Under the pieces are notes generated by a model, which saw only the letters and a list, made by a program, of their open reading frames with translations, had not been told where the DNA came from and did not search any database. Shown piece after piece: positions 1,514-24,500 of a DNA stretch of 64,000 bases (the stretch's first letter is position 1; the number at the start of each line of letters is the position of its first letter). The translations under genes and the position numbers were made by a program. This DNA comes from Sminthopsis crassicaudata (Eukaryota), in NCBI RefSeq assembly GCF_048593235.1, contig NC_133617.1, forward strand, positions 669,332,958 through 669,396,957, in the 5' to 3' direction.

Positions 1514-1634
1514 TGAGTCTAGCAGGATGGTTCCCTCAGGGAGGTTTCGTGTACTTGTCACTCGCTGTAGTCTCAAGGTCACCATGTATCTGGTTCCAGG
1601 TTCAAAGCAGAAGGGTTTAGACAGGACCACAGCT
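1514..1634 (-). CDS. LAMB2L: Laminin beta-2-like exon 17 (AVVLSKPFCFEPGTRY...GTILLDS); gene continues beyond window start
   Basis: AG/GTAAGA flanks, 121 nt; no further laminin exon recognised in 1-1513. Confidence 0.93.
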
Positions 1635-1748
1635 CTGCAAGGAAAGAGGTATTAATGCAAGGCACTGGTGCCTGGGTTCACCCACCCCCTAGTATCTTCC
1701 ACACCTGCATCCCCTAATGTTCCAGACTCCCCTTGACTGAACTCATAC

Positions 1749-1870
1749 CTATGCCTGGGGGGTAAGGCCACCTGATAGAGCTGCTCTGAGGGCAACACAT
1801 TGGCACAACGGCTGCTGCTGGGCAGGGAGTAGGCTCGGACACTGACAAGGGCCTCCCAGTCCTCGGGGGC
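1749..1870 (-). CDS. LAMB2L: Laminin beta-2-like exon 16 (APEDWEALVSV...SSRCANVLPSEQ)
   Basis: AG/GTATGA flanks, 122 nt. Confidence 0.93.
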
Positions 1871-1958
1871 CTGGGAGTGTCAAAAGATCAAAAGTGAAAG
1901 CATTTTACTCCCTCCCCACCCCCCAGTCTCCCCATAAACCCATAGTCATAGGCCTGAC

Positions 1959-2117
1959 CTGAGCTTCATAACGCAGCACAATGTCATATTCCATGGCTCG
2001 TGGCACTGGAGGGGCCTGGAGCATGAGGCCAGCCCTGTTCTCCACCCTGGCAAATCCAGGTCCAGTCCAGGAGGAGCCAGGAGGGCCTTTGCCCCAAAGC
2101 CGGGGCTCCACAACAGC
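1959..2117 (-). CDS. LAMB2L: Laminin beta-2-like exon 15 (domain IV/LF: AVVEPRLW...SWTGPGFARV...MEYDIVLRYEAQ)
   Basis: AG/GT flanks, 159 nt, SWTGxGF and MEYDIVLRYE motifs. Confidence 0.95.
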
Positions 2118-2269
2118 CTAGGAATCAGAGAAAAATAATGTCTTCCTCTAAACTTTGAGGTCTTCAAGGGAAACCTGGCTCTGCTTCTTCCCTATCTCCC
2201 TGGCCTGGGAGATCCCTGAGGGTAGGGCCCAAGGCTGTTGTTTGCTCTTGCCCTGGGAAGCTCCTTCAC

Positions 2270-2419
2270 CTTGAATGGTTGGTGGCTGGGGCGGCCATGT
2301 CGAGTAATGCGGGGAGGGCAGAGGCTGCTGCGATGGCGCCGGAGCCGGGCTCTAAGCCTCTTCTGCACAGGTCCTGTTGTTGGCAGGCAGTCAGAAGGGG
2401 CATCGGGTAGAGGGGCTCC
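2270..2419 (-). CDS. LAMB2L: Laminin beta-2-like exon 14, extra 50-aa Arg-rich exon (GAPLPDAPSDC...KRLRARLRRHRSSLC...QPFK)
   Basis: TCCTTCAG acceptor, AAG|GTGAAG donor, 150 nt, phase 0/0, open frame. Confidence 0.7.
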
Positions 2420-2814
2420 CTGAAGGACAGCAGGCCACAAGGTCCATGTCTCCCCCTTTGGACGTGGGCTCCCAAAGTCACCTCCTTCTCCTTTGGTTAA
2501 CTATTAAAATGCCAAAATACCAACCCCCCCCCATTCTTCTCCTTTTCAAATTCTCCCTTGCTGTCGGCTCAGATTCTCAAAATCTTCATGCCAGTGGGGA
2601 CCCCCCCATATGCCATGAGCAGCCAGTGCTGCCACAGTTTCCTGACCAGTGGAGATCTAGCTCCCATTTGGAGACTGTCTGTGGTGAGCAGCTCACCATC
2701 TTCTTGGTAACTATTCTATTCAAGTTCCTCCCCTAGAAAATCCTCCCTGACTGCTCCAGTCTTTTGCCACCTCGCTCTTCTCCGAGTTCCAACATCTGGG
2801 GCCCACATACTCAC

Positions 2815-2971
2815 AGGCAGCCGGGGGTCGGAGGGTCTGAGCCTCTGCCCAAGCTCCGCCTCAGCTACAGCCTGGTCCAGGGCTGCACAGAAGTAACCAG
2901 ACTGGAGCTCAAGGCAGTCTCGGCCTTGCAAGTGGGGGCGACAAGGACAAAGGCCCTCCCCTGATGAGCAC
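2815..2971 (-). CDS. LAMB2L: Laminin beta-2-like exon 13 (CSSGEGLCPCRPHLQGRDC...DPRLP)
   Basis: AG/GTGAGT flanks, 157 nt. Confidence 0.92.
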
Positions 2972-3075
2972 CTGGTGGCACAGCAAGTGGAGGGGGATAA
3001 GGTGAACCTCTCTCTTCTGGCCCTGGCCCCGCCTGGGAGCCCCCCTTCCCCTAGCTTCCAGCATCTTGACCAAAC

Positions 3076-3155
3076 CTGTTGCTATAGGCGCCACCAAAAT
3101 CACAATCACAAGGCCGGCAACCAGTGAAGTCGCTGCTCAGTCCCCAGAATTCTGG
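3076..3155 (-). CDS. LAMB2L: Laminin beta-2-like exon 12 ([26 protein letters not shown])
   Basis: AG/GT flanks, 80 nt. Confidence 0.93.
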
Positions 3156-4533
3156 CTGCAGGGAGAGAGGAAGGAGAAAAATCACCGATTACATGGCTCC
3201 TATTCCTGAAGGAGCTAAAACTTACAAAGAGCTTTCTTCTCCAGGTAGATGATATCTGGCTATGATCATGCCCATTTTACAAACTGGGCCACTGTGGCTA
3301 AGAGGAGTGAAATGATTGGCTAAGGACACACCTAGATCTCCTGTCTCTAAAGCCTAGCATGTGCCACCAGGTATGCCACGCTGTCTCCTCTCTGGGAGCC
3401 ACAGAGCAAGGTCTGCAATCTCAAGTAGATGACCAGGGTCAGCAGTTACAGTGCCAAGGAGGGACAGAGGTTGATATTTTTTAAAATGTTGAAAAGTTTT
3501 CTAGATTTGTCCATAAAAAAGTTAATCTCTATTTAGAGCTGTAACTAGGGTAAGATAACCAGAGCTTTTCCCATGGTGCTGACATGGCAGGGGGCATATT
3601 TTTACTTTGTGACAGTGAAGAGATTACTATCCTTGTCATCACCACCTGCATTCCAGTCTCCTCATCTCTTAAATGAGGGGGTGGGACTCAAAGTGATTTC
3701 TAAAGCCTTCCTGGTTCAGTTTTAGGATCTCCTAATCAGGCCTGAGTTAATCCAGAGGTAGATTTGATGGTATCCAATGGTACCTTAGAGTTCATTTCCT
3801 TGAAATACTTGCTCTCCACATATCATTTTTCAACTTAATATATAGTGATATTTAAATTCAATTTTCCAAAAATAAGAGCTACATTGAAAATATTTTTAAA
3901 ATGATGATTGGGGAAATAAATTCATCTAGAAGCAGTGTGGTTTAACAGAAAAAACGCTGGACTTGGAAGCAAAAGATATGGTTTGCAATCTGGTTGCTCT
4001 CACAAACTAGCCATGTGACCCTGGGCAAATCCCTTTTCTGAGAGTGTTTCCTATTTTCTACAATAATTCACACTATCATATCCTGTGGCCACTTCAGCAG
4101 ACAAAATATCTCGGGGGAAAATAAAAGCTTATTTAGAACCTTAGAAATCACTGACTTAAAAAGACCCTCAAAGCACAGAACTAAGATCTGGAACAGAGAA
4201 ACAGAAAATGCCAGAGGGCCCAGGGGAATCGGTGGGTACAACCTTCTCCTTTTTATAGTTGGGAAAGCTGAGAACTGGAGGTAGATCAACTATACAGTAG
4301 AATAGCTTCATCTTTGTTGAATTTGCCAGAATAAACTAAAGGTATTACAAAAATAAATGTACCAAGGGTCAAAGATGTGGAGTAAGGGCACAGACTCTGG
4401 GCTTAAGTGTATTGGGGACAAGGATTAGAGCCTAGAGTTCAGTTCAAGTCAGGGTTCTAGGTTGGAGATTAGATTTCAGTAGTCAAGAGCAGACTGGAAG
4501 AAGAGAGTCTGAGAATCTGAGTTAAGAGCTCAC

Positions 4534-4646
4534 CAAACACTGGTCACAGTTCTGTCCAGTGACAAAACGTTTGCAATAGCAGTTACCACTGATGGAGTCA
4601 CAAGGAGTATCACCTGGGACTGTGCCCCGAGGATCACACCTGCAGG
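4534..4646 (-). CDS. LAMB2L: Laminin beta-2-like exon 11 ([37 protein letters not shown])
   Basis: AG/GTGAGC flanks, 113 nt. Confidence 0.95.
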
Positions 4647-5234
4647 CTAAAGAAGCAAAGATGGTGTCAAATGATGGAAAGGATGGTCTGGAGGGAAGAG
4701 GGAGAGATGGTCACAGAAGCTGATTTTGGGAACAGTCCTCAAGCTCAGAGAACTGGGCTTAAATTATAGTGTCCTGGGCTAGGATTCACAGAGTCCTAAG
4801 TTGGGGATCAGAGAGTTCCCAAAGCCAAAGGGTCATTTACACAGACAGCCTTTATGTGGCATCCAGCTAGTCATAGTGACTAGGTTTATAAGTTTGAAGG
4901 TACTAGGGATCAGGGGATTAAGAGGTCCTGGGGTCACGAGTCACAAAACCCTGGATTTAGAGACTACTCATATAGGATCCCTTGGGTCCAAATGGACTCA
5001 AGCCATAGAGACTGAGTATCTTGGATTGATAGATCTTGAAGTCTTGAGTTGTGTCAAGGGATTTAAGAGATATGGAAGTTGGGGCTTCCTAAAGCCAGGG
5101 TCACATTCTGGACCTCTCAGGTCAAGAGGTCACAAGATAGGCTTTGGGCTCCATGAAGTTCAGGCTCTAGCCATCAGATATCCAAAGTTAAGAGGCTTGG
5201 GATCCAAAGTCATGAAGTTTCTGGGATCACTCAC

Positions 5235-5414
5235 ACAAACAACCTTCAGGTAATGCTGGGCTCAGGCCATAATAACCAGGACGACAAGTGTCACAGCGAG
5301 GTCCCCACACGTGGGCTTTGCAGCGACACTGCCCAGAGAGGAGCCCTCGGACCTCATCTGTGTGTGTGTCACACAGACCCCCATCCAGGGTGCCTGAAGG
5401 ATCACAGTCACACG
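5235..5414 (-). CDS. LAMB2L: Laminin beta-2-like exon 10 (LE repeat: [14 protein letters not shown]...)
   Basis: AG/GTGAGT flanks, 180 nt. Confidence 0.95.
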
Positions 5415-5550
5415 CTGGGAACACAGAAGCAGAGTTGGAACAAGGGGTCAGAAATGACAGGTGAAGTCAAGAGGTGAGGATTGGAATGGGGTGGCAAATA
5501 CCAGGATTAGGTTCATGGCTGAGGGCAGGGCTCATCATCTAAGGACTTAC

Positions 5551-5739
5551 GTTTACAGGTGTATGGGGAGCGGGGGTCTTCTCGGGGGTCCCGATGGTAG
5601 AAGGGCCGGCAGATCTCACAATGCCTCCCAGCTGTGTGGTGCTGACATGCGTCACACACACCTCCACTCACGTTGCCCGAGGCCATAAAAACAGCCATGT
5701 CAAAGTGGCAACTCCTGGCATGCTGGTGGCATTCACACT
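5551..5739 (-). CDS. LAMB2L: Laminin beta-2-like exon 9 (LE repeat: [28 protein letters not shown]...)
   Basis: AG/GTAAGT flanks, 189 nt. Confidence 0.95.
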
Positions 5740-5829
5740 CTGGGGGAAAGAGAAGGGATGTGGTGGGTCAGAGATACCCAGAGCACAGCAAGGGCACGTG
5801 GGTTAGGGAAGGCAGTGAGCAGCACATAC

Positions 5830-5950
5830 CCCGGCAGGCATGAGCATTCCCAGGCTCGGCTGGGCGCCAGGGCTGGTCATGGAATAGGTCCTGGCAGCGC
5901 TCACAGTGGGGTCCAGCTGTCTGGTGCTGACAAACACAAAGCCCATGGAC
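5830..5950 (-). CDS. LAMB2L: Laminin beta-2-like exon 8 (LE repeat: [19 protein letters not shown]...)
   Basis: AG/GTATGT flanks, 121 nt. Confidence 0.95.
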
Positions 5951-6159
5951 CTACAAATGGCAGAGCTGGTAAGACTTTAGGAACACTGCCTCAGAGAGGC
6001 ACCCCCCCCAAGACCTGAAGGGGAGGGGAGGACCTCTGACCACCACAAGGACTCCAGACTCCGTCTTCCAGAAGCAATAGCCTTCTCCACAGCCACCCAC
6101 TAAAGGTGATTCCCCTCCTTTACTCCTGACACTCTCTGCCCTCAGAGACTTCCACTCAC

Positions 6160-6365
6160 CATGCCCTCCACACTTGGTGGGGCACCAGGGGCAGGCGCAC
6201 ACTCAGAGGCATGTCCATGGCAGAGGCAACTTCCTCGGACCACAAGCTCATACAAGGCGTAGTAGTAGTGAGGTCCGTGACGGTGGCCCCAGCCCCCTAG
6301 GGGCCCATCTCCCAGCGTGTGTAGTTTAGAGAAATTCACCCTCAGATTGGTAACTCGAAGCAGCT
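6160..6365 (-). CDS. LAMB2L: Laminin beta-2-like exon 7 ([19 protein letters not shown]...[14 protein letters not shown])
   Basis: AG/GTGAGT flanks, 206 nt; LN end and first LE Cys pattern. Confidence 0.95.
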
Positions 6366-7137
6366 CTGGGGAGAATGGGGTAGTAAAGGCAGGGAGGATG
6401 GAGACTTAAGGTTGGACAACCCCCTCTCAAGTATCCCTGTTTCCCCAATCCATCTTTCTCTCCAAGCCATCCTTCACACGTTTGCTAAAGTAATGCAGAA
6501 ATATGACTAGGTTATTGCCTTACTCAGAAACTTTCAAGTAACTACAGAATATCTGAGACCATTATCGTGTAAATGCAGCCTCCTGAACTCTAAATGCCTT
6601 AAGGTTCATAAATCACTTTAACACTCTACGAATATTAGCATTGCTATTTTATAGCTGAAGAGGCAACAATGTGGCTGATAGAGAACTGGCCAAGACAGCA
6701 GGGTTCCAGTCCTGTTTCGGACATCCTGGCTCATTCATTATAGTTGGAAAAGCCTGGGCAGATCCCTCAGTCCATCAGGGTTCTGGGACTCCCTGAAGCC
6801 CTTAGGCTGCATCTGGAGAGTGTCTTCAGCTGGGAGTACAGGACGAGAAAAAGAGGTTCAGAGAAGGCGAATCACTTGTCTTTGGCCACAGGCCTAATGA
6901 GAGGCAGTGCTAGCTAGTTCTTAGCCCGTTCAACGGACCTGGAGGCTTTCTTAGAATATGCTCTGATAAAGCCCAGCTCCTCACTAGAACAAACCAGGCT
7001 CAGTCTGGGCTCAAGTCCTTTGTTCTCCCTCTGGAATGCTTAGTTCCCCTGCTCCCTCCCCCAACCAAATCCCACACTTATTGATCATTCCAGAGGAAGC
7101 TTAACCCCTTAGCTAAAGAGACCAAGACAGACTCCCC

Positions 7138-7326
7138 TTCCTGAGTTCAAATCTGACCTCAGACACTTAATTGCTGTGTGATCCTGGGCAAATCACTTCA
7201 TCCTGTTTGCCTCAGTTTCCTCATCTGTAAAATGAGCTGGAGAAGGAAATGGCAAACAACTACAGTATCTCTGCTGAGAAAATTCTAAATCTGGTTGAGA
7301 AGAGTATGATGAGACTGAAAAAACAA
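7138..7326 (+). mobile_element. MAR1-like CORE-SINE
   Basis: CCTCAGTTTCCTCATCTGTAAAATGAGCTGGAGAAGGAAATGGCAAAC core and tail. Confidence 0.8.
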
Positions 7327-7988
7327 GTTAACAATTCTTACTATGTCCACAGCTGTGTGCTATCCCTCCCTAAGAAAATATTGGCAAAGATACTTGACCT
7401 GAATTGGGCTCCCACCTCTACCACTGATTAGCTCTGGGCTAATTGCTTTCTCTCCATTTTTCAGTTTCTTCCCTTATGAGATTTGAACTATATGGTCTCT
7501 AAGATCCTTTCTGAATCTACACACCTAATCTTCCCATGAAGATGCTATGTAACTTTATTTAGAAAGTGTGACTAGTTTTCCTAGAAACAATTACTTAACA
7601 TGTTCATGGAAGAAAAAAAAAATGAGGCCCCTTTAAGAAACACGCTATTTGCTATACCATTTCATTAAATGCCTTTGCTTTAGGGAAGAAAAAAAGGGGG
7701 AGAAAAAACCTGCTGTCAAAAACATTGTAAAATGCTAATGCCTGGAAGGAAGCATTGATAGAGGTAGAGCAGCCGAGAATGATTTGGTTGTCAAGGAAAC
7801 CTTTTTCTGACTAGAAGCCCCTGTCTTGCTTTGTGCTCCTCTCAGGGGGGTCACAGAGAGCATGGTGGTGCCTACACAGGATCTCAGCTTCCAGGGAGGA
7901 AATATCCCAGTGGATGTGTGGGTTGGGAGGAGTCTCAGGGTGAGGGGTTTCCGAGGTCCTCGGCCTGGCCATCTGAAAAGTCACTTAC

Positions 7989-8052
7989 CTTGGATCTCTG
8001 GACTATAGGGATCCTCCACAGGGATGGCTGGGTCCAGAACTTTAAAAATTAC
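7989..8052 (-). CDS. LAMB2L: Laminin beta-2-like exon 6 ([21 protein letters not shown])
   Basis: AG/GTAAGT flanks, 64 nt. Confidence 0.95.
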
Positions 8053-8156
8053 CTGAGATTGGGGAAGGAAATAAGACCTGAAGTGCTAACCACTGAAGTC
8101 CAGCCCTTGACAACCCCCATCCCCAGTCCTAAGCCTTCTCTACTTAAGGGACTGAC

Positions 8157-8345
8157 CTCACCCTGGCTTGATGGCTCAATGTTTGAGTAACGCTGATCAC
8201 AAACGAGATCACTGACTTTTCGGCCAGGTGTAAGTGGAATTCCAGGGAAGAGGCCGGAACAGTTGTGAGCAAAGTATCGGTAAACTCTCCAGGAACGACC
8301 CCCATCTGCTGAACGCTCAATGAGAAGACCAGCAGGTCGAAAAGT
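8157..8345 (-). CDS. LAMB2L: Laminin beta-2-like exon 5 ([19 protein letters not shown]...IEPSSQGE)
   Basis: AG/GT flanks, 189 nt, no stops. Confidence 0.95.
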
Positions 8346-8489
8346 CTAGGGAAAGGTGTGTCAGGGTGTACAGGATCAAAGTATTCATATGGCTAGATGT
8401 CACTAGGGAGTCAGAGGTTAGGAAGTAACTGGATTTAGAAGCAGAATCCCCCTGGTTAGGTCATCTGGAATGGGATCATTTGTGTTAAT

Positions 8490-8740
8490 GTGTGTTAATA
8501 GCTATCAACATTTTTACCGAATTTACTCTGTCAGGTATTGTGCAAAGTACTTGCTTTACATCTCATTTGATCTTCACAACAACCCAGGGAGGTAGGTACT
8601 ATTATTATCCCCATTTTATAAATGAGGAAACTTGAGGCAAACACAGGTTGGGTGACTTGCCCGAGGTCTCATAGCTAGTAAGAGTATGAAGCAGGATTCA
8701 AACTAAGGTTTTTCTAGCTGCAAACCATCCATCATGCTAT
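8490..8740 (-). mobile_element. MIR-like SINE
   Basis: ATTATCCCCATTTTATAAATGAGGAAACT core. Confidence 0.7.
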
Positions 8741-8828
8741 CCATTGCCCAACCCAGGGGTCAAGAATCATATGAGGAAAAAAATACAGTGGTATCAAAAA
8801 AAACGAAGGAGAGGTATGTGTTCAGTAC

Positions 8829-8902
8829 CTTGAAGGTCATGATAAGGTGGGTGAAGTAGAATTCGCCCTCCAAGTTCAGCTGGATACTGACATTCTCCAC
8901 GC
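8829..8902 (-). CDS. LAMB2L: Laminin beta-2-like exon 4 (VENVSIQLNLEGEFYFTHLIMTFK)
   Basis: AG/GT flanks, 74 nt, LN motif THLIMTFK. Confidence 0.95.
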
Positions 8903-9040
8903 CTTGAACCAATAAAGACCTGGTCAGAGCAACCCTGTTGTCCTCTAATATCCCAAACCTACCCCCTGGCTCACAAGTTTTCCATTCCTGACTTTCCCTC
9001 CCTTTTCCTTCCATTGCCATCCAAAGCCTTTCCCCCTCAC

Positions 9041-9155
9041 CACTCTCAGCTTGCCACCATGTTCTTTCCCCATCAGGTCCACTGAGAGAGATCACATTCT
9101 TGATTTGGTGGCCTCCTTGACCTCTTGAGTCACAGAAGAAGCATTTCTCAGAGTC
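9041..9155 (-). CDS. LAMB2L: Laminin beta-2-like exon 3 (DSEKCFFCDSR...WWQAESG)
   Basis: AG/GT flanks, 115 nt, phase 0 to 1. Confidence 0.93.
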
Positions 9156-9369
9156 CTGAGGGAGGAGGGGTGTCAGGGTCTAAACAGCCTCCCCTCAGAA
9201 AAGTCCCTAAGTTCATTTTCCCTCCCAAGAGAAACCCCTTGGGATCCCCTGTAGAAGCTTTGGACCCCCATTATCCTCAACGGTCCCTTAGGAAACTTTG
9301 GCCTTCTTCCCTCTGCCAGACCTTATTCTCAAAGGCTCCAGAAGCAGAAAGGCCTGGCCCAATACACAC

Positions 9370-9551
9370 CTGCAAGTGGCTGACAATGCAGTAGGGTTCA
9401 GGTCCCCTCAAACCACAGGTGGATGAGGCATGGAGACTCTGGCTCCTGCCCACAACTAGATTGCCAGTGGGAGGATAACAGCTCCCTCCAGAGCAGCCAG
9501 GTGGGGGCAGAAGATCAGGTATTTCATGGGCACAGGCAGAAGGTATCTGTA
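9370..9551 (-). CDS. LAMB2L: Laminin beta-2-like exon 2 (LN domain start: [18 protein letters not shown]...CIVSHLQ)
   Basis: TTCTCAG acceptor, CAG|GTGTGT donor, 182 nt, laminin beta LN signature. Confidence 0.93.
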
Positions 9552-9685
9552 CTGAGAACCAGAGAAAAGGCAAGACCCTGAAAAACTTCCCACCCTTTTC
9601 AAGGACTACCCCCACCAAGGAATACACCCCCACCTAAGGTACAAAAAGCCCCCCCCATTCCTGCCTCATTGGCCACCCCCTTTAC

Positions 9686-9725
9686 TTAGCAGCAGTAGCA
9701 GCAGCACAATGAAGCCGTGGCCCAC
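9686..9725 (-). CDS. LAMB2L: Laminin beta-2-like exon 1, signal peptide (V/M)GHGFIVLLLLLL; start provisional (GTG)
   Basis: Leu-run hydrophobic core; donor A|GTAAAG in phase 1 joins exon 2 in frame; no in-frame ATG in the exon. Confidence 0.65.
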
Positions 9726-9928
9726 TTGGCTTGTGGCTGAGGGATGGGGAGCAGTGGTTATCCAGTACCGAAGGCTCAGGCTATCTGCTCCCTGGCTGGG
9801 CCTGGGAGGTGGGGGATGGGGAAGAGGTTGTGAGAGGCTTGCCTAGGCTAGGAGGTAAGGGGGACGACTCTACCTCCATCAGTTCCCCTTCCAGTCCTTC
9901 CTTCCCCAGATATCGCCTCCCCTCCCCA

Positions 9929-10995: not shown

Positions 10996-11001
10996 TTTAC
11001 T
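10996..11001 (-). terminator. Candidate variant polyadenylation signal AGTAAA of CCDC71
   Basis: Followed on the minus strand by a GU/U-rich tract (~10955-10975); no AATAAA noticed between it and the stop codon. Confidence 0.35.
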
Positions 11002-13247
11002 GAGGACAGCAGAACAAGTGGCCTGCAAGTGGTCAATAATTCCCATTTAACTTAAATGCTGGCAAGACCTCAGACCCCAGAGGCCTGAGGGCCTTTCCTT
11101 GAAGTCAGTTGCACTCTTCACAGGCCACACCTGCATACCGAACATCACAGATCCGCATCCGTGGAGACGTCACAAACAAACCAATGAACACGCAGCAGGG
11201 ATGAGGGTCTGGTCCTCGAGTTTCCCAAAGTCACAAAGGACACCAACCAGGGAAGGAATGGTGACCCACCTTCTAGGCTCCACCTCCACCATTGCCACTA
11301 TGGACTCCGAGGGACCCACAGACAGCAGAGGGCAAGGGTATGGTGGATGACTTGAGGGCAGGATGAAAGGGGAAGGAGACACTGTTTGGATTCAAATTTG
11401 GGGGGGGGAGTTCCAGCTCAGCCCCCCATCTGCGAGTCCGGGGTCCAATTGGGAAAGTATTTCCACTGCCATGGAAGTGACCAAGCTTTTCCGTCATTAC
11501 CCCATCCTCCCCAACTTCTACAAAAGTAATGATAGTAGACAACTTCTCCCACAGGCCCCAAGCCTACATCAACCCATCAGCAGAGGTCATTTTTGCAACC
11601 ACCATTGCCTGACTGGACTAGGAAGGGGCATGGCTTGACCTGGCTCAATAGCTTCCAGCTCTGTTCCACAGGCCCACAATAGGGTCTGAGGTGGATTAAG
11701 GCCTCAAAGTCTTGGTCCTGAGACACAATGACCACTGATACTCTAGGCCACTCCTATCTCCAACCATCCTTTTGTTCCAAGTGGGAAGAGGCTGAACATC
11801 TCTCTTCCCCCATTTCCCCTCCCTCAACATATACTCCCAGAGCTGAGACCCTAGAGTATAACTGGTAGAAAGAAAGGGAGGGGAGACCAGATTCTGGGGA
11901 TGGATGAAAGGAAAGAGGGGAAGAAAGGCTGGGGCTAGACAGCCACAATTCCTCAAGGTCTAGCTGCAGGGATTTAGAGATAAGGCCCTGGGGAGGAGAA
12001 ATAGCAGCCAGGAGGGAAACAGCAGCCCTGAGGAAAGGCCTTGAAGCTCTGGATGGTTGCCCACAGACTCATGGTGTGCAAGGATGGGAGACAAGGAGTC
12101 ACTGTCTGGTTCTGTCCCCCTGGGAAGAAGTAGACAAAAAAAAAAAAAAAAAAAAAAAAAATATCCTCTTTTCCTCTCTTGGCCTAGATATCAGCTCTAG
12201 GGTCACAACTCTATGCTCATTCACTTGGCAGGCTTCCCCAGGATCTTGCAGAAAGAAGGGCCTAGACACCTGATTTTCTATTTGCTCACAAGGCCCAAGT
12301 CCAGGCTGTCTCAGGACAGGGGAGTGATCTAGCCTCTAGCCAAATTAACCCCCAGAAGCAAACTCCAAGAAAGCAGAGATTCCCATAACCACTCAGAGGA
12401 AGTGAGAATCAATCCCAAAAACTAAATTACCTGTCAGTTTACACTCTGGCTCCCTCTGCTACACCCTTAATAGAACTTAGGAGGTGCCTCACTGAGTCGA
12501 TGTTCAGGTAGGCAGATAGCAGACCTTTCCCCTGGTATTAAGATTAAAAAGAATAAGCCAGGGGTTCTTGATTAACCTGTTCCTGAAACCAAACCACACT
12601 CTACTCCTTCAGTGGCAAGAACTTTCCTGGAAGCATGGAGATGACCCAAAAACAAGAGGAGTTGTAGATGCATTTTGAAAAGAGGGAGGAAACCCCAAGC
12701 TCTGACTACTGATGGAAGAGGCAGACACTGGGGGCCAGGGTGTGGGGTGGGAAAAAGGGGGCATATAAAGATATAAAACTTGATCAAAATGAAATCAGTA
12801 AACATAGAGCTTGGAAAATAACAAATCACAGTGCATCACGTCATGACAAAACTGCCTCCCCCAAGGGTTTGGGGAAGGTCTATTGGGGTAAAGCCGTAAG
12901 TGGCTCTTTGAGAGCAGGTAATAAGACCTGCTCTCTCCCTTGGGACGGGGGAGGCATCTCCCTGCATTTCTGAATGTGGCTCAGAGCCAGGCAGGCAGTC
13001 CCAAGAGCCTGGTGGCCAGAAAGCCTGAAACAGGAATGGAGCAAGCTGCCCAGAGTCTGCAGGTATCAGTTAACACACTGTCACCCAACACCCATACTGC
13101 TCCAGCCATCAGCAGGAGAATCAAAGTTTCTCACTCCCCCTTCCCACAGGGGAGGATGGACGAGTTGGGGGAGGGAGGGAAGGGGGCAGTGGTGTGTGGA
13201 CTGGCTGGGTCAGAGGGAAATGGGCCCTGGACTGGACCTTGAGTCAA

Positions 13248-14462
<1,215 letters not shown>

Positions 14463-16470: not shown

Positions 16471-17680
16471 AAGTCACATCTTTTGGCTTTAACTAAATAA
16501 TACAAGGTAAAGAGAAACTAGGATATAGGAGAGACCCAAACTATACACTCTAGAGGAAAAAGTTAAGAACACGTTTAACTGGAGAGATTCAGAGAAGACT
16601 GACACCTAAACTAGGTCTTGAGGAAAGTGAAGAACTTACAAGTGAAGAGGAATAGGTACTACAGCTCAAGGCTGAAGCATGATAGGCTAAGATTATGAAA
16701 CAGTAAATCCTCCCATATGGCTAGATTTTGGCTGGAGTGTGTAAAGAGAAACAGGATGAGACAGTATGAGAAAGGATGATGGTAACAAAATTATGGAAGG
16801 CCTTTCATGTTAAGACAGATTTCTCTTTTTTTCCTATACGCACTAGAAAGACCCTGAAGGTTTTTGAGAAGAGGAGTGATAAGGTTAGACTGCCTCATAG
16901 CAAAGTTTTTTTGGCATCTTTAAGAAAGATGAACTGGAGAAAAAAGCTCTGAAAAGCAGGAAGACTACTAAGAGGGTGGTTGGTTATCAACAGGACATGT
17001 GAGGGATAAGTAATGGAATGAGGGTCATGGCAATGCAGTGTTCAGGAAACAAGTTGAATACAGATCTTTGCTCCTCTTCAGGTGCTGCTAAACCATGCTG
17101 CAAGGATCCTTTACAAATCCATGCTATTTAATATCCACTTTAGCCCTCAAAGCAGCAAGGCAATCCTTTGGCTCTCACTTAATTTTTTATTGCACATCCC
17201 CAATGGTCCAAACTTAAATCTCTCAAACCATACTTCCTTTCTTTCCTTTGTCATACAAGACCTTAGCTTAAAAAAGACCAGGGTGTCCCATTTCATCCAG
17301 GGCCATCTCCAGTTGTCTTAATCTATACCTTGTTACTGGACCCAGATGACTCTGGAGGGGAAGGTGAAGTAGATGACCTTGATACATTCCTCCCTCACTT
17401 AAATTCAATTAACTAGCATGTCATGATGTCACCTCCCTGATGTCATGGTCATCTTCAAGAATGAAGGACAAACAACAGTCTATTGATAAAATAGAGCTAA
17501 TCTGGGTTTTCTTTTCTACCTCAAACTCACCAGATATTATGTTCCATTTTCTCTTTGCTCTAGTCTTGGATGAAGGCGTGTCTCTTTTCCTTGCTATGAC
17601 CAATACTACTTTTAATCCCTTATCTCATACTTTCCTATCTCCTTCCTTACAACCCCTCTTCATTTTCTTTCTTTCTTTTT

Positions 17681-17812
17681 TGAGGCTGGGGTTAAGTGAC
17701 TTGCCCAGGGTCACACAGCTAGGAAGTCTTAAGTGTCTAAGACCAGATTTGAACTCTGGTCCTCCTGAATTCAAGGCTGGTGCTCTATCCACTGCGTCAC
17801 CTAGCTGCGCCC
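17681..17812 (-). mobile_element. WSINE1-like SINE
   Basis: Near-identical to the 908-1038 copy; T-rich tail. Confidence 0.85.
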
Positions 17813-19260: not shown

Positions 19261-22200
19261 GAGTGCCAACTTGTGAGGTCTTTCCTGACCCTAGTCCCAG
19301 AGCCAAGATCCTTGTCCCCTGAAAAAGCCAATGTACTTACTTTATATACACTTTATAGCACTCATATGTGCTCAGGTTATTTATTCCCATTTTAATATAA
19401 ACCTGTGGAAGGCCAGGGCTGTTTATTCTCATCTTTGTATCCCTAGCACAGCACCTAGCACAGTACTGGACACATAGTGGACATTAAATACTTGCTGAAT
19501 GGACCTGGGAAATAAAGAAGAAGGCAAAGTCAAAATTGATTCTCATTCATGAGAGTAAAGGAAGGTGCCATGGAAGGGTCAATGGCAATGTGGGCTGGGA
19601 TTAGAAAGAGTTTACAGCTTGAGGAGGAAGTTGCTTACCATCTGTCAAACCAAGAAAGTCCATGCCTGGAAGTATCTAGAAGGAAGAATGTAAGAGGAGT
19701 CAAGAGTTGACGGAATGGGAATGAGTCTGCATTTCTTTTGTAAGACAAGGGCTCAAGAGACTTCCATTACCACAAACCCGGGAGGTAGGTAGTATATGTA
19801 TTATCCCCGTTTTAATGATGAAGGAATTGATGGACTGAGAAAAATGACTTGCCTGTGGTCACATAGTCAAGTTTTAAATGCTTGTTTCCTTACTTCTGTT
19901 TCAATGTTCTTTCCATTAATGTACAGTTATTTCTATAGCTCAAATTTATCCTCTCTATATCCCTGTGAGATATGTAGCATAAGAACCAATATCCCCATGT
20001 GACAAAAAAAGAGGAGAGGCCCAAAGGTATGCCATCTCTCTAGCAGACTTTTTTGTCTCCCTTCCCCTAACTCAGGGGAAAGAGTTATCTCATTGGGTCA
20101 GATTTAGAGTTGAAAGGGGCCTCAGGAACCTTTCATCTTTTCTTTTTTTTTCCAAAAAGGAAACTAAGACCTACAGTGAGGCTACTTAGAGAATCAGGAC
20201 TTAAACCTGTAAGAAATATTAGAAAATTCAGTTCTGTTACTTAAAACCAGAGTGATTTCAGAAAAGTCACTTGACTCTCAGATTTTTTTCCCTTAGTAAA
20301 ATGAGAGGATTGTGCTGGATGATTTCTGAGAAAGAATATTAGTTACAAGGGCTCAAAGAATAATAAATTTAGATGTGAAAGGAGCATCAGAGATCATCTA
20401 GTTCACCTCCTTATTCTACAAATGAGGAAACTGAGGTCCAATGAAGTCAAGTAATTTGTACAAGATCTTGTATCGAACAAAGACCTGAGACCCAAATTCA
20501 GGGCTTCTGTCTCTTAGCTGTTTAGCATATCTCTTAAGTCCTAGGGCTTAGGTTTTCCAGAGTCTGGCCAAAGGAAGCGAATGTGAAATCAAGGCTTTCT
20601 TATTCTTAAGGACCCCAAATTTATTTAGAAAGTGAATGGAAAGATAAGACTCTTTCAACCCTGGAAGAAACTGAGAAGTAAGCTATTTTGGCACTCCAGC
20701 CTGGCAATGGGAGGGGCCCTTGGTCTAAGGCTACATTTTGCCTTTTCATCCCTCTTCGAGGATGGCATCCACGGAAACCACCACCCCATTCCTCCCAAAA
20801 GAAACAAAAGCCAAGAGAGCTACAATTCACCCCATCATTCATAGGTTCCCATTCAAAGAGAGGCATGTAAGCAGGAAACTGTCTTCTCAACCCAAACCTC
20901 TCATCCTCTTCCAGGGCAAATTCAGAGCCAGGGAGACAATCAAAGGGCAGGCCTTCCAAAACCTGGCAGGAAGCTCTGGGCCTGGGCTTGGTCCAAAATC
21001 CTTTGCAGAAGAACCTCCTTAGGCCCAGTGGTTGGGACAGTGGAATGGGACTGAGACTTTCTTTTTCATTAGCAAATAGGAAATGTTTCCAACTTCTGCA
21101 ACATCTCAGCCCTCAGGTGGCTTTATTACCATCCCGAAAAGTACCAGCATTCCTGGGGGCAAAGGGGATTCCAACTGAAGACTCCTGCCTGGGCCATGGG
21201 TGGAGTGGCTGACTTCTTCAGCACTGACCACAGACAGACACAGCTTCCAGAAGGGAAGGAAAGGGAATTTGTGTAATACCAATGCTCCCAGGGGCCTGAA
21301 GACCCAGGGACAGGAGCAACCTCCCCAGGTGCAACTAACTCATTAAAAGATCAGTAGCAGCTTAGTGCTGAGGGATCTCAGGCAGAGCCCTAACTAAGTA
21401 GTATTCCCTATGCACATCAACACCAGGAGCAGTCTTTCCAGCATACACATACACTTCCCATAGTCCTAATAGGCTCAGGTAGCAATTTGAAAACTCCTGG
21501 TAGATTATCTTATTCCCAGAAGCAGCAATTGTCACCTCTTTGTTTAGAAACATTCCTTTAGGCTCAAGAAGCATGAAGAAGAACCGTGGTAGTGACACCC
21601 CACCCCACCCCCACCCCCATTAAACCACAAACAATCTTTTTTTCCTTCACAGGACCTTAGCCCTTTATTGGATCTGAATTTGGAGGTGGAAAAAGGGAAG
21701 GTTTGGGGTCTTGGGACTTGGCTTGTGAAGGGTGAAAAGGAAGGAGTCTTGGGTTTGCACGGGGTGTTTTGTCTGCCTGACCTCTGAGCTGAGGGTCATC
21801 CCATACAGGCTCTCCTACACCAGCATTTTCTCACTGTAGCTGATTTGGAGAGGATCCTGCCTTTCCAGAAGCCTGGACTATCACAACAGACTTCATTCCA
21901 AAGGAACTAGACACTTCAAGGTGCCTAAGGCCTTTCAATTAGACCTGTATTTTCCCACAGCCTCGAGAAGAGAAGGGAATGGGCTTGAGGTGTGAACATG
22001 TGGGAGGGCACAGAGATAGGGGCCAAAAATAGATCAGAACCAGTGAAAGGATCAAAAGAATCCTAGAAGGTATAAACTGGGAGATTAAAAAAGCCCAGAT
22101 TTTGAGCTGGATAGGACCTTCAAACCCCTATACTGCACACATGGGAAAACTGAGGCTCAGAAAAAGGAAGTTACTTACTTGCCCAAGGTCACAGAGGCAC

Positions 22201-22519
22201 AACTGGGAGGTTTGGTAGACTGGGGAGAACTCCCTGGGATAAGGAAAACTCAAGAGAGACAGTGGATGCTCTGTAGGGCTTGGTGAGAAATTGGGGGAGG
22301 GGCTGGTTCAGAAAACCTACACGAGAAGTAAATGAGGAAAAGCCTGGCCCGCGTTGTTTTGTTATGCTTTGGTTTTGAGGGGGTGTGACCTTGATGAATA
22401 TATGGAGTACTGAGAGAAGAAACCTAAGAAATAGAGGGCCCCAAGACTGAGGCACAGGGAATAAGGCAGGAAGCTGGGAGAGCTGGACTGTACTAATAGA
22501 GCAGGTTAGAGAATGGCAA

Positions 22520-23100
22520 GGATGGGGATGAAGATAGAGATGGGGTGGGGATGGAGATGGGAGTGGGGGTGGGGATGGAGATGAGAAGATGGGGGTGGGG
22601 GTGAGGATAGAGATGGGGTGGGGATGGAGATGGGGGTGGGGATGGAGATGAGAAGATGGGGGTGGGGATGAGGATAGAGATGGGGTGGGGATGGAGATGG
22701 GGGTGGGGATGGAGATGAGAAGATGGGGGTGGGGATGAGGATAGAGATGGGGTGGGGATGGAGATGAGAAGATGGGGGTGGGGGTGAGGATAGAGATGGG
22801 GTGGGGATGGAGATGGGGGTGGGGATGAGGATAGAATAGAGGTAGGGAAGAGGGCTGGAGATGGGGGGTGGGGATGAAGATAAGAGTAGAGGTGGGGAAG
22901 ACGATTGGAGAGGGGGGTGGGGATGGGGTAAGAATGGGGTGGGAATGAGGAAGATAGAGACGAGGATGGGGATGGAGTAGGGGAAGAGGATGGGAGTGTG
23001 GTGGGGATGAAAATGAGAGAATAGGGATAAAGATGAGGGTGGGGGTGGGGATGAAGACGGGGATAGGAATGGGGATGAAGAAGATAAAAAGAACGAAGCC
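22520..23100 (+). repeat. G-rich degenerate tandem repeat (GGGGTGGGGAT(G)GAGAT units; ~67-bp higher-order unit)
   Basis: Visible periodicity of G4-5 runs. Confidence 0.9.
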
Positions 23101-23149
23101 AGGGGAGTCTGGGGCAGTGGAACAGTAAAATATGTTTAAGTGTGTATGA

Positions 23150-24500
23150 TCGGAGAGTCCCAGAGCTTCTAAGTATGGGGTCAGCAAGATCTCGGTCCTG
23201 GGGCACCTGGTACGTATGAGAACGGTGGGATACGGTGGATAAAGAAGGGGGTGGGAGGGGCAGGGAACCTGGGGGTCGTGGGGGTTTCGGGCGGCTGGGG
23301 CGGAAGGCCCGAAAAGATGTAAGAATGGGAAAATTCTGGGTGGGGAGCTATGACTGTGGAGAGACTTATGAAAGGGAGGGTGGTGGGTGCAAGGGGTAGC
23401 TTGGGTCGGGAAAGGGAGGGGAGGGCAGGGCAGGAGAGGGCGGGAGGGGGAGGATTGGAGTGGGGGAGGGGCTCCGAGGAGCCCCCCAGCCCCGCCCCCT
23501 CGGCGCTGCCTCCGGCCCGGCCCGGCAGACTGAGCCGCCGACGCCGCCGCCGACGCCGCCATGGCCAGGCCCCGGGCCCAGCGCCCCCTCTGGACGACCC
23601 GGGCCGGCTCGGCCCCGCGGGCCCAACACCTACCGGCCGCCGCCGCGGGGACCCGGGACCAGCCTCTGCGCCGCCTCCGCCGCTCCAACATGGCCGCCCC
23701 GCTGAGGGCCGGAAGTGCAGCTCCACTTCCGCTTCCGGCCCCCCCCCTCCTCAGAGCCCCCCTCCCAGACTGGGGACCCCCGGCCCCTCCCCTACCCCCA
23801 GGGTCTCCGCCCCCTAGGGTCTCCCGCGCCCCCACGTGGCGGTTGCTGGTCCTATTTTAGCTCTAGTCCAGTTCAACTAGACTTTGGGGAGACCACAGCC
23901 CTGCCCTCAGGGAGCCTCCAGTTTGGGGGAAAAACCCAGGCCTACCTTTCGGGAGCCTCCAGATTGGGAGAGAAACTCCGCTCTAAGGGCTGGAAGGTCT
24001 CGATCTGAGGAGGGGATTGAAGCCCGCCCTCAGGGAGCCTTTATGTGGGGGGGAATTACAGCTCCCCGCTGGGAGCTCTGGGGGCAGGAGAGGAAGCTCC
24101 TACCCTAATCCTTTTAAGACCGTCTGTCGGAGGGACACTCCCCTGGCCTAACTCCCGAGGACGACGTTGGGCGCAGTAGCGCCCTCATGACCCCGACAGC
24201 GCGGACCTCGAGCCCTCACGTGGCGCGAGGACACAGCAATCGAAGCACGTGTGGCTCGGATGGCCTCCCCCTATTATCTTTTTCCCCCTGAGTTTTCTTA
24301 ACCCCTCCCTCTGACCGCTCAAGTCTCCTTGCCAGAAAATCGCCCACAACAGCTCTGGTTGTCCCCCAGGCGCTGTACTGAACCCTTTTCTCCGAGACCC
24401 TTTTCCTGGCCATTGCATCAGCCGCCTTCCACGAGTTCTCGTTCTCGCGCATTCTTTGTGCACGTGACTTCTTCTACAAGCTAATACTCTGAGTTCCAAT
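23150..24500. promoter_or_regulatory. CpG-island promoter of CCDC71 (ETS CCGGAAGT/CACTTCCGCTTCCGG, YY1-like AACATGGC, four CACGTG E-boxes)
   Basis: High GC/CpG density; motifs read directly. Confidence 0.8.
23634..23730 (-). other. CCDC71: CCDC71 5' exon 1 (TSS approximate)
   Basis: CCG|GTAGGT donor inside a CpG island, next to ETS and YY1 motifs. Confidence 0.55.

Follow-up and report, generated by a model that had tools for sequence, protein, structure and literature searches.

The 5′ part of a probable LAMB2L orthologue next to CCDC71 in the dunnart Sminthopsis crassicaudata

Gene structure and domains at the locus

The window analysed here is a 64,000-nucleotide stretch of the genome of the dunnart Sminthopsis crassicaudata (assembly GCF_048593235.1, contig NC_133617.1, positions 669,332,958 to 669,396,957). 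On its minus strand lie the CCDC71 coding exon and, downstream of it, the first part of a laminin beta gene that we suggest is the orthologue of LAMB2L, an ancient gene found directly upstream of LAMB2 (Table 1). Exon junctions were set by scoring each GT or GC donor and AG acceptor near tblastn matches to the closest full-length relative. Seventeen exons between 9801 and 1514 join into a frame that contains neither stop nor frameshift, and the internal junctions of this span (16 out of 16) are GT-AG with pyrimidine-rich acceptors. With exon 1, predicted by homology, the model has 18 exons, 2358 nucleotides and 786 codons and still no stop. The gene runs past the window start: the next exon of the Tasmanian devil lies at L001:21940-22215, and window position 1 corresponds to L001:20819. 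What the window holds is the first 43% of the gene, measured against the 1843 residues of the devil model. The devil exons, mapped in the same way, translate exactly to the devil protein P0151 and have the lengths of the dunnart exons except for 6 nucleotides (two leucines) in exon 2; the two loci are 90.5% identical in DNA.

An earlier note on this DNA had described 17 exons with canonical splice sites, 754 open codons encoding a signal peptide, LN, LE and domain IV, and a start at 9725. The exon model is right, because the 754 codons match exons 3-18 plus the final 40 nucleotides of exon 2 exactly under the refined junctions. The start has to be abandoned: the minus-strand codon at 9725-9723 is GTG, and no ATG occurs anywhere in the open frame of exon 2 (9842-9686). 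The devil model P0151 has its ATG in a separate exon with 20 coding nucleotides (L001:10001-10020), and the identical 20 nucleotides and GT donor are found in the dunnart at 11158-11139. Dunnart and devil share 98.7% identity across the 300-nucleotide block (window 11000-11299) in which these lie, a level equal to that of the CCDC71 coding exon and far higher than the background of about 90%. The block is probably the LAMB2L promoter and first exon; alternatively, it could be the end of the CCDC71 3′ untranslated region.

Two other locations for the start were rejected. The open stretch VVIVSQDQDFEALIHLRPYCGPVEQSWKLLSQ (window 11640-11735, minus strand) corresponds to the exon with which the Gracilinanus LAMB2L model P0001 begins; read from 11735 to 11640, it starts in the dunnart with GTG, not ATG, and supplies no start codon. 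The ATGs near 9668 and 9657, which fall between exons 2 and 3, open frames that are short or stopped and have no leader. In the preferred model, about 36 residues precede the hydrophobic core FIVLLLLLLIQIPSACA (residues 37-53), which is followed by SACA/HE. In the wallaby, too, the hydrophobic leader is preceded by a long N-terminal extension; leaders of the usual kind are seen in placental and platypus models.

Searches were run exon by exon (Pfam on ten stop-free exon-bearing stretches, PDB sequence and representative searches with exon 6), and the joined spliced model was used for identity, trees and substitution rates. The Pfam matches are to Laminin_N (four pieces), EGF_laminin (five) and LAMININ_IV_B (one), the four Laminin_N pieces together covering most of profile positions 1-233. 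Exon 6 matches the LN structures of laminin beta-1 (8DMK, E = 2.6e-23; 4AQS, E = 4.8e-23) and netrin-4 far more weakly. Domain IV is of the beta type rather than the L4 domain of alpha and gamma chains (LAMININ_IV_B, 1.9e-09). The part of the gene inside the window thus encodes a laminin beta chain short arm: leader, LN, LE1-5 and beta-type domain IV.

The residues expected of such a chain are in place. Of the cysteine columns that beta chains conserve in the part encoded by the window, the dunnart keeps all 48, and 184 of the 192 positions that are at least 95% conserved in non-therian beta chains are kept. Seven beta-1 LN residues at node-interface and Pierson-site positions were mapped onto the model, and six are retained (S68, L127, S200, E204, D218 and R234), mutation of which disrupts beta-1 polymer nodes or causes Pierson syndrome (PMC9852560). 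The seventh, R208, is lysine, the usual state in LAMB2L and LAMB4 (Dama has glutamine). Beyond the window, 123 of 125 invariant cysteines are retained in the full-length devil and wallaby LAMB2L models, as are the coiled coil and the C-terminal cysteine; both models end in …AHATC, and the final …ATC is shared with other LAMB2L proteins. Near residue 1496, both the devil (P0151) and the wallaby (P0152) lack two cysteines that six comparator beta chains share invariantly; judging by position, our guess is that these probably belong to the cysteine loop that interrupts the coiled coil.

Table 1. Exons of the LAMB2L model and the adjacent CCDC71 exon in window coordinates
Feature	Position	Strand	Content and evidence
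LAMB2L exon 1	11139..11158	-	ATG, 20 nt coding (MRICDV and first 2 nt of R), GT donor; predicted by homology to devil P0151
LAMB2L exon 2	9686..9801	-	Long N-terminal region and hydrophobic leader (…GHGFIVLLLLLL); AG acceptor 9803-9802, GT donor 9685; devil residues 7-43
LAMB2L exon 3	9370..9551	-	Predicted leader cleavage region and LN start; Pfam Laminin_N 4.5e-08
LAMB2L exon 4	9041..9155	-	LN; Pfam Laminin_N 3.8e-12 on stretch with exons 4 and 5
LAMB2L exon 5	8829..8902	-	LN (VENVSIQLNLEGEFYFTHLIMTFK); Pfam Laminin_N stretch common to exons 4 and 5
LAMB2L exon 6	8157..8345	-	LN core; Pfam Laminin_N 1.6e-16; PDB 8DMK/4AQS ~1e-23; 95% identity to P0001
LAMB2L exon 7	7989..8052	-	LN; junctions scored
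LAMB2L exon 8	6160..6365	-	LN end with therian-specific rebuilt loop, LE1 start; Pfam Laminin_N 6.5e-07
LAMB2L exon 9	5830..5950	-	LE1; EGF_laminin 2.6e-07
LAMB2L exon 10	5551..5739	-	LE2; EGF_laminin 3.9e-10
LAMB2L exon 11	5235..5414	-	LE3; EGF_laminin 6.5e-12
LAMB2L exon 12	4534..4646	-	LE4, first part; EGF_laminin 1.6e-08
LAMB2L exon 13	3076..3155	-	LE4 and LE5; 100% identity to devil protein
LAMB2L exon 14	2815..2971	-	LE5 and domain IV start; weak EGF_laminin match, 0.0046
LAMB2L exon 15	2270..2419	-	Domain IV, basic/proline-rich variable stretch; least conserved part
LAMB2L exon 16	1959..2117	-	Domain IV type B; Pfam LAMININ_IV_B 1.9e-09
LAMB2L exon 17	1749..1870	-	Domain IV; junctions scored
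LAMB2L exon 18	1514..1634	-	Domain IV, ends …ILLDS, then gtaaga; last exon within window
CCDC71 coding exon	13251..14462	-	Upstream of LAMB2L, same strand; Pfam CCDC71L 9.9e-148

Orthology and the neighbouring LAMB2 gene

The position directly downstream of CCDC71 is where LAMB2 would sit in a genome without LAMB2L, and several databases call members of this clade 'laminin subunit beta 2'. Both points would fit a simpler account in which the gene is the ordinary LAMB2 of the dunnart and marsupials have one gene only at the locus. The identities of the dunnart model argue otherwise. It is 96.9% identical to devil LAMB2L, 91-92% to wallaby and Gracilinanus LAMB2L, 70-73% to placental LAMB2L, 69% to platypus LAMB2L, 62% to chicken LAMB2L and 59% to Lates lamb2l, while marsupial LAMB2 (P0366) reaches 60.5%, LAMB2 overall about 58-60% over the N-terminal half, and LAMB1 55%. 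In the representative search, exon 6 found a 95%-identical match in P0001, the Gracilinanus 'laminin subunit beta-2-like'.

Trees were built with comparators trimmed to about 950 N-terminal residues, the rows being hand-chosen from several hundred matches and those from Molossus, Rhynchocyon, Bos, Ovis, Cervus elaphus and Pteropus (P0031) being excluded as low-quality, partial or decayed. LAMB2 sequences (Gracilinanus P0366, platypus, Cervus) were found with the LAMB2 half of a fused swift model, and LAMB4 sequences with a profile built from the halves that lie upstream in fused LAMB4-LAMB1 models. Under LG+G4, two quick trees (52 and 64 rows) and a careful maximum-likelihood tree (37 rows, 896 columns) agree with one another. 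The window gene is sister to devil LAMB2L (support 100/95) and is nested successively within marsupials (100/100), therians (100/100) and a LAMB2L clade (100/100). That clade spans sharks to mammals and tracks the species tree, and it includes the fish genes named 'laminin, beta 2-like' as well as bird, reptile, amphibian and platypus members. True LAMB2 forms a separate clade (95/91) without the window gene, and it too tracks the species tree.

The devil locus shows the gene order in the closest species available. On one strand it carries CCDC71 (392 residues), LAMB2L (1843 residues) and, 2.2 kb downstream, a further laminin beta gene of 1794 residues whose exons show, in the LN domain, 75-88% identity to a fragment of bird LAMB2 and whose length equals that of Gracilinanus LAMB2; the dunnart window itself ends inside LAMB2L. 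Gracilinanus likewise has LAMB2L (P0001) and LAMB2 (P0366, 1794 residues) on one contig. With 97% identity to devil LAMB2L, a place outside the LAMB2 clade and a second gene present in the devil, we regard the identification as ordinary LAMB2 as scarcely credible.

The dunnart gene is thus grouped with the genes called 'laminin, beta 2-like' in zebrafish and 'laminin subunit beta-2-like' by NCBI in Sarcophilus harrisii, Notamacropus eugenii, Gracilinanus agilis and Monodelphis domestica, and it shares exon structure, domain order and the position after CCDC71 with devil LAMB2L. LAMB2, the Pierson syndrome gene, belongs to the same family, has the same domain architecture and is the tandem neighbour of LAMB2L, but its clade groups with LAMB1 and it retains the canonical GDNLLDPRREIREK loop. 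The nearest paralogue of LAMB2L is instead LAMB4. A clade with 100/100 support unites LAMB2L with LAMB4 and one lamprey gene, leaving LAMB1, LAMB2 and another lamprey gene outside, and a site-mixture model applied to the 37 rows recovers the same splits, this one with a support of 99. Like LAMB2L, LAMB4 stands upstream in a tandem pair with a gene of the beta-1/beta-2 type and usually has lysine at beta-1 R208; it differs in forming its own clade on a different chromosome, and chicken and Danio aesculapii have both genes. The name 'beta-2-like' is therefore a misnomer, the nearest paralogue in our trees being LAMB4 and not LAMB2. NCBI names inside the LAMB2L clade vary among beta-1-like, beta-2, beta-2-like and beta-4-like.

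Teleosts have lamb4-lamb1a and lamb2l-lamb2 tandems (PMC9504374). Several database proteins of 2300-3600 residues (P0168, P0280, P0281, P0292, P0294, P0328 and P0337) fuse, by read-through, the two laminin beta genes of a tandem, either LAMB2L with LAMB2 or LAMB4 with LAMB1. Because of the teleost tandems and these fused public models of neighbouring genes, we suggest that LAMB4-LAMB1 and LAMB2L-LAMB2 are two copies of one ancestral tandem pair.

Selective constraint and the therian LN loop

Nei-Gojobori distances, calculated with our own script over 784 aligned dunnart and devil codons from the N-terminal 43% of the gene, give a ratio of nonsynonymous to synonymous divergence (dN/dS) of 0.11 (dS 0.127, dN 0.014; bootstrap confidence interval 0.064-0.176). 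The part of LAMB2L in the window has been under strong purifying selection since the dunnart and devil lineages split. The ratio is lowest in LN (0.03) and LE1-5 (0.02) and higher in domain IV (0.34) and the N-terminal 50 codons (0.46). Between the two species, identity is 95.9% in exons and 90.3% in introns.

One segment of the LN domain departs from the usual pattern. The sequence GDNLLDxRxExxxK is near-invariant in beta-1, beta-2 and non-therian LAMB2L and varies somewhat in LAMB4; in therian LAMB2L it is replaced in 12 of 12 sequences by a Gly/Pro-rich GD(G/R)P(L/P)GG(W/L)… (exon 8, window 6230-6275), and the marsupial loop is two residues longer than the placental one. This rebuilt loop sets therian LAMB2L apart from the fish, bird and platypus members, and marsupials add to it the long N-terminal extension. 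The therian stem branch of LAMB2L is long (0.27-0.30). By sequence order, the segment would correspond to the link between the last two LN strands, beta7 and beta8, and we suggest that it was rebuilt in the LAMB2L of the therian ancestor and has been conserved since. In the polymer node, subunits touch one another through two sets of contacts, one of which is made by loops between beta7 and beta8 (PMC9852560), and the change may have altered the polymerisation behaviour of LAMB2L. Residues 246-257 are not mentioned in the papers on beta-1 polymerisation residues.

These observations leave some room for a functional but non-standard beta chain, in which the rebuilding of the loop has altered or abolished node formation and the protein acts as a network modifier or with a new partner. 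Its replacement in all the therian sequences, the contacts made by such loops and the long stem branch are what this account would predict. Yet the beta-1 node residues defined by mutation are kept, the very strong constraint on LN and LE fits a conserved interaction equally well, and the loop is placed by sequence order rather than structure: an AlphaFold2 model of devil LN-LE1-2 (P0151:44-425; 34-row alignment) has a mean predicted local distance difference test score of 61.6, with the loop below 50, too poor to place it. We regard a non-standard chain as possible but doubtful.

Taken together, we conclude, with a probability of about 0.85, that the window contains the 5′ part of the dunnart LAMB2L orthologue (18 exons and 786 codons, compared with about 1843 in the devil), an ancient jawed-vertebrate laminin beta gene directly upstream of LAMB2 whose nearest paralogue is LAMB4. 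The earlier note had proposed that marsupials keep an extra laminin beta chain, and the phylogeny, the second laminin gene in the devil and the dN/dS of 0.11 support it; the note also mentioned a coding lamb2l-type gene in fish and birds. The LAMB2L protein would be secreted, would assemble with one alpha and one gamma chain by way of the coiled-coil region that is encoded beyond the window, and its LN domain would take the beta position in laminin polymer nodes. At the level of the family, zebrafish Lamb2l protein has been found in extracellular matrix by mass spectrometry (PMC3946537).

Several points weigh against this conclusion. About 57% of the coding sequence, the whole coiled coil included, lies beyond the window and is known from other species. 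Exon 1 and its ATG are taken from a predicted devil model, and the Gracilinanus model P0001 is truncated (1498 residues) and skips the hydrophobic exon. Because the region of about 36 residues ahead of the hydrophobic core is unusually long, secretion may not be assured. The rebuilt LN loop could be a sign that normal polymerisation has been lost. Finally, some placental LAMB2L models are flagged LOW QUALITY and the Pteropus copy P0031 is plainly decayed, indicating a gene prone to loss.

Some of the same points could be read as signs of a decaying gene or silent relic, broken beyond the window or no longer expressed, like human LAMB2P1 and the Pteropus copy: repeated loss of the family in placentals, a hydrophobic exon without an ATG, and a 3′ portion that lies outside the window. 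However, a dN/dS of 0.11 over 784 codons, falling to 0.02-0.03 in LN and LE, is incompatible with long-standing neutrality. All splice sites and all 48 conserved cysteines are preserved, a complete 1843-residue model exists in the sister species, and the region of exon 1 is conserved at 98.7%. We consider a relic unlikely, and retain the identification as a constrained LAMB2L orthologue.

LAMB2L in other mammals and minor features of the window

A word search with P0001 found the same gene in the devil (1843 residues), tammar wallaby (1851 residues), opossum and wombat; at 58-65% identity in platypus, Rhinolophus, Phyllostomus, Eptesicus, Molossus, Dama, Bos, Ovis, Cervus, hippopotamus, Echinops and Rhynchocyon; and at lower identity in birds, reptiles, amphibians, coelacanth, teleosts (some as 'laminin, beta 2-like') and sharks. 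Retention of LAMB2L is not special to marsupials, as long, intact-looking models are present in platypus, bats, ruminants, hippopotamus and tenrec.

Human LAMB2P1 (formerly LAMB2L) is an unprocessed, transcribed pseudogene between CCDC71 and LAMB2, which by position we take to be the human remnant of the same gene; the locus is reportedly documented by Durkin et al. 1999 and in the HGNC naming. The dunnart copy differs from this pseudogene in being open and constrained. How such decay looks in a placental can be seen in P0031 (Pteropus alecto, 428 residues, named 'laminin subunit beta-4'), a patchwork translation of a decayed LAMB2L in which the therian loop is still present. It represents a loss of LAMB2L within bats, other bats having long models.

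Mammalian laminin biology is framed around beta-1 to beta-4. We tentatively propose, as a suggestion that is more likely to need revision than not, that many mammals (marsupials, monotremes, bats, ruminants and afrotherians) have an uncounted fifth long laminin beta chain, a sister of LAMB4 and not a copy of LAMB2, whose LN node-contact loop underwent a single rebuilding in therians, over 150 million years ago, and has stayed fixed since. According to a review on zebrafish, there are 'no mammalian orthologs' of lamb2l (PMC7364686), and in a study of teleosts the gene is regarded as an additional fish copy dating from the third genome duplication (PMC9504374). Our trees contradict both views and show LAMB2L to be a pan-gnathostome gene; we found no account of mammalian LAMB2L in the literature searched. 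LAMB2L is annotated full-length in monotremes and several placental orders, which would make human and mouse the unusual cases. Provided that the protein is produced, species with LAMB2L could form laminin trimers beyond those of the standard models, and the dunnart is a laboratory marsupial open to expression and knock-out tests. NCBI and Ensembl already list this gene for other marsupials, with a name that says little about it, so the present result clarifies an existing annotation and does not introduce a novel type of gene.

Elsewhere in the window, 800-1200 and 17650-17800 contain two copies of a repeat with similar translations (…GLSDLPRVTQLGS…CLRPDLNS.PPEFKAGALSTA…), and a further weak copy is found in the devil locus at L001:2900-3015; the repeat is probably a marsupial element of the short interspersed nuclear element (SINE) type. 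The stretch at 22189-23835 is GC-rich (59%), has a strong GC skew and carries low-complexity repeats rich in Pro, His and Ser in a long open frame; it resembles a CpG island with a simple repeat and not a gene.

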